A DNA stretch of 62,960 bases, the filler included, from Guillardia theta CCMP2712 (Eukaryota > Protista > Cryptophyta), in the NCBI RefSeq assembly GCF_000315625.1. It is 4 parts of 4 records of this genome, joined end to end, with 100 filler letters (N's around TTAATTAATTAA, not from the genome) between each part and the next. Parts side by side here need not be neighbours in the genome. Positions count along the whole stretch, not along the records: positions 1 to 25,311 come from NW_005434393.1; 3 more parts are not named here. One strand, written 5' to 3'. Of the stretch, positions 68-17,956 are shown piece after piece. The notes beneath the pieces are model-generated. The model did not search any database and had not been told where the DNA came from. It saw only the letters and a list, made by a program, of their open reading frames with translations. The position numbers and the translations under genes were made by a program. Every line of letters starts with the position of its first letter. Within the stretch, counting starts at the first letter, position 1.

Positions 68-492
68 TGCAGGAAAACATTCAGTGCTTCGCCTTTTCAA
101 ACCACCTCAACCCTCCGCACGGCAGCACACAATCTCAGCAAGTACAGGTTACCTTCCGTATCCAACCGCATAGGCAAAGATGCATCAAAGTCTGCAAGCT
201 TGCACTGATTGAGGTACAAAGAGCGCTGCAAATCATCTACTAACTGGGTCTGATTCTTGGTTTGCGCATCAACTAGCTTCGCCTCCGCGACCTCGACCTC
301 CCCTCTCAGCTTCGCCTTCGCGACCTCGACCTCCCCTCTCAGCTTCGCCTTCGCGACCTCGACCTCCTCTCTCAGCTCCGCCTTCGCGACCTCGACCTCC
401 TCTCTCAGCTTCCTCGTCCTCTACCTTGCTGCCGCGATCTCCCTCTCGTCCCCAGCCTTGTTCGCTGCCCCCAGCTTCGCTTCCACGACCTG
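68..492 (-). pseudogene. Inverted fragment of the Crinkler-like gene header exon plus intron
   Basis: Reverse complement closely matches ~4340-4690 (EAKLGAANKAGDERE repeats, DAQTKNQTQLVDDLQRSLYLNQCKL, and the 86-nt intron). It has an internal stop/frameshift and the intron acceptor AG is lost. Confidence 0.8.
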
Positions 493-613
493 AGATTGGA
501 GATCATGATGAGGAGCGGTAAGGGAATAGGTCGTAGATGTTCTAAGTGAGGTCAAGGTAATATTGGGTACGGTCGGACCCCAATTGGCCACGAGGATATC
601 GGTGCGAGAGGCT

Positions 614-14133: not shown

Positions 14134-15313
14134 GCAACCGGGAGATGATCGCTCAGAGACGCAGACCAATGAGGGATGCTGGACTCGGTAGAAAAGGAGA
14201 ACGAGAGACCGAGAAAAGATGAAGAGACGCTAGATCGATGACGAAGCGACGAAGAGGACGTGAGAGCTTTGTTTGTGCTGGTCTTGTCTCATAAGGAAGC
14301 TCGCAAGCCTGGACCATAGTAGGGTGAGAAGTCTACTGCTTGCCGCAGCCCGGGTAAGGGCGAGGATGCCAACACGCTCTTGCCATGGTAGACTCTGAAG
14401 CAAGGCGATTGGTGGGAGCTAGAACGGCCGGGGGAGGGAGGGGTACCTTGTTGTAACTTGAATACCAGCATTAAAAGTGTGTCTACAATAAACAGCCCTC
14501 TGTTCCCAACGTGGTGTAATGTTCTCTCTCTGGCAGCCGCAGTCGAGCCGCAGTCAAGCACAATATCGTCCTGCCACGAATGTGGGATGCCTATCTCGCC
14601 ATCACTTCTCGGAGCTTGCATCTTCAGGGCGCGATAAGGGTTCAGAGACCGCCGTGGATCCAGGCGGCTTTGCTGCCCTCGGGGAAAATCACATCCCTCC
14701 GATGAGCCACCAGATGCGATGCCGAGCTGACCTGTCTCGCACCGAGTCCCATGGATCTCACTGCATCGCACGTCGCTTGCAACCACGAGAGTCTCCTTTG
14801 AGCCTGGCAAGCGCATGCCTGCTCTTGCTCCATCCCCGTCTGAAGCTTCAGGAGCGCGTGCGACATCGTCAGTGCCGCTGGAGCCAGTTCAAGTACCCAC
14901 ACAGGTGTGGAGCGTGTCGCTGCATCTACACACCAAGAGCCAAGATGATGCATAAGGCTCCACACACAAAGACCAGAGCAACCGCCACGCAGCGATCACG
15001 CATGCGCACCTGCTTGATGTGGCGCCCTCAGCGAGGCTCACGAGTCGCCATGGCCCGCCATTGAAATATGGCTAGGGTACTGCATCAACCAGCTTCGCCT
15101 TCGCGACCTCTACCTCCGTCAACGTGATCTCCCCCTCGTTCCCAGCCTTGTTCGCTGCTCGCTACTTCGCTTCCACGACCTGGAGTCCGCAGATATTGGA
15201 GACCATGACCAGGAGCGGTAAGGGAATAGGTCGGAGATGTTTCAATTGAGGTTAAGGTAATATTGGGTACGGTCGGACCCCAATTGGCCACGAGGATATC
15301 GGTGCGAGAGGCT

Positions 15314-17956
15314 ATGGCGCCGGCAAAAACGAGGGATAACACAGAGGGAGGAGGCGGGGGAGCGAGAGACAGGGAGGACATGGCGGCAGAGGGCGAAGGA
15401 CACGATGCAGGCAAGTTGGCAGGCAAGCATGGCAGGGCAAATGACCACAACCATGGCGATGAGAAGGTAAGCTAGGTTCCCCCCTGAAGCTCGTGACTTG
15501 CCCTGCTCCATTTGCCGGCTTCCATAATCTCCTCTTCTCGCTCTAGTTGACATCAAACTTGATGTGCAATGCTGGGAACGTACTATCATCTCCCGTCCTT
15601 GAACCTCATCTCCCGTCATTGAACGTGGCTACTTGTTTCATATGGCACACCCCTCGGCATGAGCCCCCACCCCTCCCCATGGCTGAGCCAGCAGTAGCTG
15701 CCTGATCCAGCAGTAGCTGCCTGATCTCACACGTGCTCGCAGGACTTCGTCTTGGTTGATGTGTTCTCGCAAGTCGTCAAGGTTCCCATCAGGGCAGACA
15801 CTTCGGTCACAGACGTCTGCGACCACCTCGCATCGCTATACCCAGAGCTCACCCCAGAGCACCTGTACACTTGTGACGGCTGCGAGTTGATGATGGAGGA
15901 CTTGCTGTGCAATGTGTGTGTAGCAGGAGAACACCTGCTGCTGGCGTTGGGAGCAACCGACGATGAGAGGAAAAAGTCTACTGTGCTGAGCTCCCTCGGA
16001 ATCTTCCATGGGGTTCCCAGGACTGCGTTCCAGCCGATGCCAGCGAGAGTGACGTCGTCGTCCTCATGTTCCCTCCTGACGGGTCAGTGTATCCTCAACC
16101 CGAGGATAGCCTCCTCCTTGAAGAAGCTCTACATAGCAGTAGAGGGAGAGTGCCATTCAAGCCTGACTTACGGGTTGAGGGCTGACTCTGCCCAGAAGCC
16201 GCGCGTTCTGACGAGTGTGTGTGTGGACACGTCGAGCTTGAAGCATCTTGTCGTGGTCGGAGGAAAGTCAAACTTGAAGAGCGTCGGGGACCTCGTCCGA
16301 TGGGTGAGGGCGAGGATGGGAGGTATCCCTTCCTGGGTTCGCTTGCATGCGTACGTCTTCTCCAACCTAGGGAGTGATGTTCGCGAGGACGAGAGTGAGA
16401 AGGATTGGTTCGAGGAGCTGGATGACAGGTGAAGGAGTTGTTCTCGTCTTCATCACCTGATGTTCTGCTGCCAGCACTGCCATCCCGGTGCTGTCCAAGA
16501 ACGAGAACCTTCTCATCAGTACAAAGGTCACGCCAGGTTCAAGGACAACACGAGCAACCTGATGCGAACTGACGTGGATTGTTGATATTAGTTGTGTTAT
16601 CGAAGAAGGATTCACTAGTGTGGAAGACAACTCACGACGGAGGTCAGGCGATTTACGGAAAGAAGGCCCTGGCCTTCGATCCCTTGAGGTTGGACGATTT
16701 CAGTTGCCTCATTGAGAGCCTGGTACCGATCCCACGACCTCTTGTCCGATGTTGGGGTAAACTGTCACCACAGGCCGACTCCTTCAATTTTCTACACAAG
16801 ATGCAGCTGTGTGCTACGGAGGTAGCAGGGGTGGGAACATTTCTCAACGGGGAGGTTCGTTTCAATGGTATCCCAGTGGATATTCCGTCCTTGCAGAAGC
16901 TGAGGATCACGTTGCGGATCACCTCGCGCTCCGAGTCAGCGCACAACGGGGGGAAGAGCTTTGTACTGAGGCCTTACTTTGGGGACGAGAGTGTCTGGTG
17001 TCACCTCCCCCCTCACGGCCACGTCCTTCCCTTCTTCTTCACCGCTGGGCCTAACATGATCTTCACTCCGTGCTTGGAAACGGTCCTGCCTGCCTGCCTG
17101 CCTGCCTGCCTGCCTGCCTGCCTGCCTGCCTGCCTGCCTGCCTGCCTGCCTGCCTGCCTGCCTGCCTGCCTGCCTGCCTGCCTGCCTGCCTGCCTGCCTG
17201 CCTGCCTGCCTGCCGGCCGGCCTGCCTGCCGGCCTGCCTGCCGGCCCGCCGGCCGGCCGGCCTGTCTGTCTGTCTGTCTGTCTGTCTGTTGCTGTTGTCT
17301 TTTCTCAGCATTCCTTGATTTTACAAAGTCCCTGCTCATTACGTGTGCGCTAGAGAAGCTTTTTCCTTCCTCTGACGTCAATCGCAGATTGACGTGCTCA
17401 CCTGGGCGACATCTCCCCAGATCAAAGTACTTGTTGTTTCTCCACAAAAGTTTTCTTCTCACTGCTGTGTCAGTCTTTCTCGAAGGAAGATTTCATCATT
17501 GTTATTTCGAGAATATCAGCGCAGGTGTAACAACAACACACCTTCCTCTCTCCCTCCCTCGTTCTTCCCCTGTCTCTATCTTCAGCTCTTCTTTCCGTGT
17601 CTTCCATCTCACACCTTGTAATCAGATCGGGCTTGCTCTAGCGCATGTACACGATTACGGGGTTGTCCACCGAGGAGTTATCCCTGAAAACATTCAGATC
17701 AGGTGCAGTTTTCATTTCTAACATCTCGTAACTTGCTCGTTGTTTTCTCTGATGCTCCTCCCTGCTCCGCGCCTTGTGATGGTTCTCCTTGCTTCTGATC
17801 GCTCCTTTCCCAGGGCATGCGCCAACATGAAACTCTCACTCTGTGAGGTGAGGAGCTGCAACTGTGCGATGAGGAGCTACTGTTGACTGCTGGCAGAGGG
17901 TGCATGTCCTCCTTGCTGACTTCGGACTCACCTCTCAAGATCTCATCTCCACGTGA
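15314..17956 (+). CDS. Ubiquitin-like-domain protein with C-terminal pseudokinase fragment, copy C
   Basis: Same 5' exons as copies A and B, then exons IGLALAHVHDYGVVHRGVIPENIQI (~17626-17702), ACANMKLSLCE, and RVHVLLADFGLT (~17897-17956). The 3' end is uncertain. Confidence 0.55.
17086..17290 (+). repeat. (GCCT)n microsatellite in an intron, expanded in copy C
   Basis: Long GCCT run; copies A and B have a short GCCT run plus (GT)n instead. Confidence 0.9.

Follow-up and report, generated by a model that had tools for sequence, protein, structure and literature searches.

Proteins in which a nucleoside triphosphatase (NTPase) is fused to a nuclease of the PD-(D/E)xK, or restriction endonuclease (REase), type are found among prokaryotic STAND and AAA+ proteins, the Avs-type antiviral STAND proteins being one example. 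A plan of NTPase, helix-turn-helix and REase modules has also been described for the C-termini of many Crinklers (Zhang et al., 2016, as summarised in a review, PMC5289972), and the same review ties NTPase-REase pairs to prokaryotic transposons (PMC5289972). The present work focuses on a tandem array of two genes, here called N and U, in nuclear DNA of the cryptophyte Guillardia theta CCMP2712 (assembly GCF_000315625.1). The array lies in the first part (positions 1-25,311, from NW_005434393.1) of a stretch of 62,960 nucleotides, filler included, hereafter referred to as the window. N codes for a P-loop NTPase with a C-terminal domain that is likely of the PD-(D/E)xK fold, and the only complete-type copy of U codes for a predicted pseudokinase. 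An earlier inspection of the sequence, hereafter the original prediction, had proposed that a Crinkler-like NTPase-nuclease gene and a ubiquitin-like (Ubl) (pseudo)kinase gene are amplified together as a dedicated conflict system. The array is instead probably the product of a young segmental tandem duplication of N and the 5′ exons of U, and not a purpose-built two-gene system.

Self-BLAST and repeat finding reveal a head-to-tail repeat on the + strand, far beyond chance, with the gene order U-N-U-N-U(kinase). In this respect the original prediction, which listed Ubl-A, N, Ubl-B, N and Ubl-C-kinase as near-identical tandem genes on the + strand, was accurate, the repeats being 93–97% identical. 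Unit A (433-7862, +; a U 5′ fragment, the N gene and its 3′ flank, also delimited by repeat families D8-D14) and unit B (7863-15122, +) are blocks of 7.3 kb with one N gene per full unit. They are followed by the partial unit C (15123-~17553, +), in which self-BLAST and reading of the sequence show that homology to A and B stops in the intron that follows U exon 7, ~25 nt from its start. According to self-BLAST, copies A and B are 96.8% identical (886-3367 and 8371-10829), and the stretch from N of unit A to U of unit B is 97.3% identical to the stretch from N of unit B to U of unit C (3778-9871 and 11009-17124); copies A and C share 93.1% identity over 433-2387 and 15123-17124, and 84% over 2348-2708 and 17201-17553. 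The copies also differ by indels, such as CCTG ×10 versus ×51 and 26.7 versus 21.7 copies of a 33-nt repeat (Tandem Repeats Finder, TRF).

The repeat described by the original prediction is thus real, but its list of components lacked an inverted partial copy of N (end of the coiled-coil exon, intron, start of the NTPase exon), detected by self-comparison on the − strand at 1-432 and cut by the left edge, of which positions 61/68-363 are complementary to 4395-4697 at 97–98%. At four other loci, L001, L003, L007 and L008, this inverted fragment is present in full at 918 nt (equivalent to window positions 5312-4395) and precedes the same U copy. Together with the downstream N, the 918-nt fragment makes up an inverted repeat of 97–99% identity (1-432 with 4395-4697; also at L003, L007 and L008), whose arms lie ~4 kb apart and flank U copy A and the 5′ part of N; inversion of the segment between them could follow.

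The three U copies are not equivalent. U copy A (614-2679, +) has seven exons, at 614-766, 1005-1690, 1737-1798, 1855-1985, 2037-2345, 2541-2579 and 2627-2679, as established from the Joint Genome Institute (JGI) models P0022 and P0023, from tblastn with the protein P0106 and from the splice sites, all introns being of the GT-AG type. U copy B (8054-10161, +) has the same seven exons (8054-8206 to 10109-10161; tblastn and splice sites). Since homology to copy C stops ~25 nt after the exon 7 donor, both are truncated 5′ copies, lacking the kinase C-lobe and the MYND finger, and what the original prediction had taken for the genes Ubl-A and Ubl-B are seven-exon 5′ fragments of a gene that is complete in copy C. 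This complete-type copy (15314-25311, +; mapping of P0106 and sequence reading) does not end at position 17956, as had been supposed, and reaches the right edge of the piece, running off it before the MYND finger. Its exons 1-7 lie at 15314-17524 and are followed by kinase C-lobe exons at 17626-17702 (HRG loop), 17814-17847 and 17897-17952 (DFG), then by >15 further short exons. The transcript-derived MMETSP protein P0106 (1011 aa), which maps to window positions 16377-25059 in >20 pieces, leads from U exons 3-7 through the kinase C-lobe and a long helical region to a MYND finger. Because its first residues derive from the last part of exon 2 and from read-through of the 47-nt intron 2, which was retained, exon 2 belongs to the same transcript as U exons 3-7 and the kinase.

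The product of the U gene is best read from its motifs as a pseudokinase, and the original prediction of a (pseudo)kinase in the third U copy was borne out by a kinase-like domain without the catalytic Asp. In copy C, the catalytic loop HRG...I...N replaces HRD...K...N; the DFG and APE motifs have been retained. An alignment of the C-lobe with CaMK1 has an E value of 4e-5, although Pfam Pkinase scores P0106 at 29.6 bits, below the gathering score of 31.7, and neither a glycine loop nor a VAIK motif is recognisable upstream of the C-lobe. Exons 3-7 may represent a diverged kinase N-lobe, judging from their position and from a CASK alignment that extends back as far as residue 169 of P0106; a comparison of the exon 4-5 stretch with PDB sequences returned chance-level matches and no kinase. 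The MYND finger of P0106, whose exon lies beyond the right edge, scores 35.5 bits against a Pfam cut-off of 22.7. The putative Ubl stretch in exon 2 matches Pfam Sde2_N_Ubi below threshold (E 0.07-0.09, 14 bits versus a cut-off of 26.4), and exon 2 has only chance-level matches among PDB sequences. Word-indexed searches for relatives of U found none outside G. theta, returning only G. theta sequences and the kinase-MYND transcript protein. Over U exons 3-5, P0106 is closer to copy A, L001 and L003, and over exons 6-7 it is closer to copy C; several of its kinase-gene exons are only 77–97% identical to the window. Either the genome probably has a second U-kinase locus, or the transcript assembly is chimeric.

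Whether U and N form a pair can be judged from their distribution across the genome. A search for co-occurrence, as suggested with the original prediction, encountered pairing only in the window, L001, L003, L007 and L008, and since these are all 95–99% identical copies of a single block, they are not independent associations. N also occurs without U. On the one hand, L002 carries an N paralogue as a singleton between unrelated genes, without U, and shares with the window only part of the coiled-coil exon, the NTPase/REase open reading frame (ORF) and ~470 nt of 3′ flank. On the other hand, L004 (G. theta JH992979.1, 410088-433220) is an independent three-copy tandem array of an N paralogue without U-like sequence, whose units are 95–98% identical with a period of ~7.6-7.9 kb (models of 717, 1009 and 931 aa). 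The L004 paralogue is 70% identical to N at the DNA level and has the same structure of coiled-coil exon, intron and ORF, with its own ATG. Amplification is therefore a property of N, with U fragments carried along; they were co-duplicated because the breakpoint fell within the neighbouring gene. The dedicated, co-amplified pair of the original prediction is not supported by these comparisons, U-A and U-B being by-products of duplication, N paralogues existing without U at L002 and L004, and U having no detectable relatives outside G. theta. A 105-aa gene model on the minus strand, in sequence of low complexity, lies before each L004 paralogue. At a scaffold end, L001 (G. theta JH993119.1, locus positions 7671-11772) holds two further partial N copies that are 99.3–99.5% identical to the window ORFs; they follow the full unit at ~2.2 kb spacing with no U between them, and indicate either a differently built array or faulty assembly near the end of the scaffold.

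The ancestral state would have been an N gene upstream of the large multi-exon U-pseudokinase-MYND gene. A block made of N and the first seven exons of the downstream gene would then have been duplicated head to tail, with the right breakpoint ~25 nt into the intron after exon 7. The outcome of such events would be the succession U5′-N, U5′-N, U-kinase with the inverted N fragment in front; the block is also present on several further contigs.

The sole uninterrupted N gene in the window is copy B (10709-13950, +), which encodes 1051 codons read exon by exon. Exon 1 (10709-11843) is followed by an 86-nt GT-AG intron, at a position also used by the gene model of paralogue P0002, and by the intron-free exon 2 (11930-13950). 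Exon 1 encodes a basic N-terminus, which by its composition may act as a nuclear localisation signal (NLS), followed by a long coiled coil of 11-residue repeats, encoded by 33-nt repeat arrays of 26.7 copies in copy A (3568-4484, +) and 21.7 copies in copy B (10976-11722, +; both TRF). N copy A (3247-6712, +), delimited by comparing the ORF list with copy B, likewise has a coiled-coil exon, a short intron and an NTPase/REase-like exon (4692-6712), the last contained in an intact 684-codon ORF (4658-6712). Its coiled-coil exon, however, is spread over two overlapping ORFs by one frameshift relative to the single ORF of copy B; this frameshift sits in the repeat array and could be a sequencing error. 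Of the two N genes announced by the original prediction, copy B is thus intact and copy A is broken. The last seven N codons and the stop codon begin a 23-nt tandem repeat, present as 9 copies with 94–95% matches in copy A (6690-6896, +) and also in copy B (13928-14134, +; TRF and ORF ends), so that the C-terminal tail and stop recur in the 3′ flank; these copies are out of frame, as 23 cannot be divided by 3. Exact look-ups of the 569-aa N products encoded in the window returned no record. Very GC-rich runs of the CCGG/GGCC type lie at 2990-3110, ~150-250 nt 5′ of the N start codon, and in unit B at 10450-10575.

The 684-codon ORF, which provides the residue numbers used hereafter, was modelled with AlphaFold2 from 19 family members (predicted local distance difference test, pLDDT, 83; predicted template modelling score, pTM, 0.84). 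Alignment, model and Foldseek locate a P-loop nucleotide-binding domain in copy B at residues ~62-260 (12079-12675, +), with Walker A CSGSGKS, Walker B VLVDE, GTN and THR motifs. In the family alignment, GKS is present in 18 of 18 sequences, as is the Walker B D, and the adjacent E in 17 of 18. The top Foldseek matches of the model in PDB are Apaf-1, NLRC4, CED-4 and the plant TIR-NLR WRR4A, followed by ORC/Cdc6 and TnsC (E 9e-6 to 1e-3). Matches to STAND proteins have E values of 9e-6 to 1e-4 and probabilities of 0.95-1.0, but their template modelling (TM) scores are low (0.15-0.26), and ORC/Cdc6 and TnsC score nearly as well (TnsC E ~1e-3). Against viral structures, the model found generic AAA+ matches only. 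On the strength of these Foldseek matches, the first ~440 residues can be read as an AAA+/STAND-type NTPase followed by helical domains, and the model shows the NTPase fold class to be AAA+/STAND-like.

The C-terminus of N forms a single alpha/beta domain in the model. In copy B, this domain (residues ~520-661; 13453-13878, +; model and alignment) comprises strands 540-544, 553-556 and 569-574, helix 583-594 and strand 600-605, and carries D552 and E573-x-K575. Conservation is high at E462 (18 of 19 sequences), D552 (18/18), E573 (16/18) and K575 (17/18). In the model, E462 lies in an upstream helix, D552 directly before a strand, and E573-x-K575 on the next strand, with K575 just beyond its end, and this E...D...ExK pattern and topology conform to the alpha-beta-beta-beta-alpha-beta core of PD-(D/E)xK nucleases, with its motif residues on successive strands and an upstream helix glutamate. 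In a separate model of residues 405-684 (pLDDT 78), ~20 of the 50 top Foldseek matches are PD-(D/E)xK nucleases, none of them significant, including AspBHI, NucS/EndoMS, MspJI, PaqCI, BbvCI, BamHI, FokI and AddAB. A PD-(D/E)xK fold is thus likely on modelling grounds, and nuclease activity may be expected from it. For the NTPase-nuclease of the original prediction, the P-loop NTPase with its invariant Walker A/B motifs and the E462...D552...E573-x-K575 signature are in place, but a significant match to the REase fold is not. N would accordingly be pictured as an NTP-switched, probably oligomerising, nuclear nuclease, whose nuclease activity would be controlled by the NTPase; such gating has been proposed for Crinkler-type NTPase-REase modules and is seen in STAND proteins.

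N is part of an uncharacterised, repeatedly amplified family with a possible role in genetic conflict. Among proteins, the large ORF is best matched by a hypothetical one from G. theta CCMP2712 (99% identity), and close relatives are limited to cryptophytes (Guillardia, Hanusia) and environmental contigs. A profile search of 1.84 billion representatives yielded 70 proteins. The distant relatives are 630-800 aa long, and a distant family, A3, includes members from the chytrid Rhizoclosmatium globosum, the aphelid Paraphelidium tribonemae and a Paraphysomonas chrysophyte. In the A3 alignment, GK, DE, E, D and E are invariant and K nearly so, in the same order as in N, and hhalign aligns A3 with the cryptophyte family over 498 columns (probability 100%, E 2.9e-42). 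Among 18 distant relatives, Pfam matches to AAA_22, NACHT, NB-ARC, nSTAND and TniB all fall below threshold, and no Pfam Crinkler header was found. N-family proteins derived from transcripts in MMETSP data come from paralogues. At L006 4802-10333 (R. globosum MCGO01000019.1), the distant N homologue P0088 begins 27 bp past the end of an Argonaute gene (ArgoN-PAZ-Mid-Piwi) and lies on the same strand.

When N is compared with the described systems, its likeness to Crinklers resides in the order of parts, from P-loop NTPase through a helical linker to a domain with a PD-(D/E)xK signature, in a patchy eukaryotic spread that includes a chytrid, in lineage-specific expansion, and in a basic, NLS-like N-terminus consistent with a nuclear target. 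In contrast, N begins with this basic stretch and a long coiled coil of 11-residue repeats in place of a Ubl header, and G. theta is a free-living alga. Pfam Crinkler matched neither N, nor U exon 2, nor the fused JGI model P0022; given also the result for the distant relatives of N, the header-based link to Crinklers drawn by the original prediction is not supported. No named Crinkler occurs among the 70 profile matches or named cluster members, most library entries being without names, and no secretion leader or translocation motif is visible in N, whose N-terminus, judged directly from the sequence, is hydrophilic and basic. N is therefore filed as a member of a broad class of NTPase-gated REase-fold proteins of eukaryotic conflict type and not as a Crinkler.

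The full N model finds its best structural counterparts in STAND proteins (Apaf-1, CED-4, NLRC4 and plant NLRs), which share with it Walker A/B motifs and, putatively, the domains that follow, helical and winged-helix ones in Apaf-1 and NLRs and helical ones in N; an N-terminal coiled coil is likewise found in plant CC-NLRs, and tandem gene arrays are typical of NLR loci. However, N has no leucine-rich repeat, WD40 or tetratricopeptide repeat sensor (Pfam found no repeat), its C-terminus is nuclease-like, and the Pfam matches to NACHT and NB-ARC are confined to its distant kin, where they stay below threshold; with ORC/Cdc6 and TnsC close behind among the model matches, N may belong to STAND or to another AAA+ subclass. 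Avs-type proteins resemble N in joining an NTPase switch and an REase-fold effector in one polypeptide with a proposed conflict role, but N is eukaryotic, has a coiled coil and carries its effector at the C-terminus, and no PADLOC or NCBIfam entry matched it at E ≤ 1. Likeness to TnsC of Tn7 and to TniB-type AAA+ transposition regulators consists of the Foldseek match to TnsC (E ~1e-3) and a weak TniB/AAA_22 Pfam match in a distant relative, whereas the unit has no transposase, none of the matches reaches its family threshold, and N is one fused polypeptide. As for U, its C-lobe resembles CaMK-like kinases in its alignment with CaMK1 and its DFG and APE motifs, but departs from them in its HRG...I...N loop, its Pkinase score below the gathering threshold and the lack of a recognisable glycine loop or VAIK; its MYND finger, above the Pfam threshold, relates it to MYND-finger proteins. 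A search of the literature on Guillardia together with Crinkler or NLR found nothing relevant.

Several results weigh against the account given here of N and of the duplication. The model of residues 405-684 has no significant PDB match, the best Foldseek E value being 0.12 (AspBHI), and neither the 684-aa N ORF nor its C-terminal domain could be assigned to a family by searches of Pfam, NCBIfam, PADLOC and PDB sequences. The frameshift in the coiled-coil exon of copy A means that not all N copies may be functional, and the ancestral order of events rests on one genome. Furthermore, the JGI models P0022 and P0023 and a 1645-aa model at L001 splice U exon 7 onto N just past its ATG; should N be spliced in this way, U-A and U-B would serve it as new 5′ exons and would not be dead fragments. 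Synonymous and non-synonymous changes in U exon 2 stand at 7:4 and 6:3 between copies, which hints that the truncated U copies are still constrained. These last points bear on a rather unlikely alternative, a fusion gene, in which transcription of units A and B would begin at U exon 1, with exon 7 joined to an acceptor that lies 14 nt inside the N frame. The product would combine a Ubl-like header, a kinase N-lobe remnant, the coiled coil, the NTPase and the REase-like domain, that is, a newly assembled Crinkler-like architecture. In its favour, P0022 (743 aa), P0023 (835 aa) and the 1645-aa L001 gene use exactly such a splice, the exon 7 donor GT is kept in A and B, where a 2-nt difference from copy C shifts the phase and the frame continues into N, and synonymous changes outnumber the others in U exon 2. 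Nevertheless, the JGI models are computational, and no transcript-derived protein with the junction was returned within the search range of ≤1300 aa. N also retains an ATG of its own and a basic N-terminus, features shared by paralogues without U upstream, the proposed intron of 581 nt is far above the neighbouring U and N introns (44-86 nt and 235 nt), and the sole transcript evidence links the U exons to the kinase.

Improbable by comparison with a duplication of N is the dedicated two-gene cassette, a nuclease toxin with a Ubl-pseudokinase regulator, selected and amplified as a pair. Co-amplification of U and N in the window and at L001, L003, L007 and L008 would suit it, as would the MMETSP transcript-derived proteins of both families (for N, from paralogues) and the joining of REase with NTPase or kinase modules in Crinkler C-termini described in the review (PMC5289972). 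Yet all these co-occurrences are 95–99% identical copies of one duplication, the L002 and L004 paralogues lack U, U has no detectable homologues outside G. theta, and U-A and U-B lack the kinase C-lobe and MYND finger. It is very improbable that the arrays reflect the activity of a mobile element which descends from transposon-type AAA+/REase genes and has N as its core gene or as a passenger. N is almost intron-free next to an intron-rich neighbour, exists in many near-identical copies with several junction types, including the inverted 918-nt fragment, and resembles TnsC in its model; its distant kin have weak TniB/AAA_22 matches, and one distant homologue adjoins a retrotransposon ORF. The unit, however, has no transposase, integrase or reverse transcriptase ORF, no terminal repeats surround the region common to the paralogous loci, and the copies found are either arrayed in tandem or located on short contigs that have the same neighbours, a pattern that unequal recombination fits better than transposition. 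With neither a transposase nor bounding repeats, the transposon reading was rejected. Hardly credible, lastly, is a repeat created by mis-joined reads. The assembly is at scaffold level with a 100-N gap at 24185-24284, inside the pseudokinase-MYND gene, and related copies sit at contig ends; but the copies differ by 3–7% and by indels, and L007, a contig of the independent ENA assembly, has the same left junction of inverted fragment, U and N at 98.7% identity. Because of these substitutions and indels and this shared junction, a collapsed or duplicated-read artefact is unlikely and the misassembly that would have undone the original prediction was rejected.

Beyond N and the U exons, the window is rich in introns and microsatellites, and Rfam and tRNA scans of it returned no matches. 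The intron after U exon 5 contains a (CCTG)51 microsatellite in copy C (17085-17288, +) and 10 CCTG units in copies A and B (2348-2387 and 9832-9871, +; all TRF), where a (TG)16 run follows the CCTG tract. The introns of the pseudokinase-MYND gene (17960-25311) are packed with simple repeats, among them a CTG/GCT array (18075-18587), hexamer arrays (19646-19810, 20327-20491 and 23861-24009) and a 20-mer array (24285-24451). No genes correspond to the long ORFs on the minus strand of this region, which are poly-Ala/Ser translations of the repeats.

The duplication of N and U exons is a caution that co-amplified neighbouring genes do not necessarily form a functional pair. Tentatively, and at a probability well short of even, N and its chytrid, aphelid and chrysophyte kin may be NLR-like immune or conflict nucleases, composed of a coiled coil, a STAND-type switch and an REase effector, whose amplification in Guillardia would reflect an arms race and in which exon shuffling would have placed a Ubl-like header from the pseudokinase gene before N. 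If so, a Crinkler-like header-NTPase-nuclease protein would have been caught while being assembled. If N is indeed a nuclease, the array would offer a clean recent example of a segmental duplication putting the 5′ exons of one gene before another. Cryptophytes would then hold a family of NTPase-gated nucleases that has expanded and is actively being duplicated, with deep but patchy kin in chytrid and aphelid lineages and a chrysophyte, and free-living algae would join the eukaryotes that possess Crinkler-like or NLR-like NTPase-nuclease proteins.

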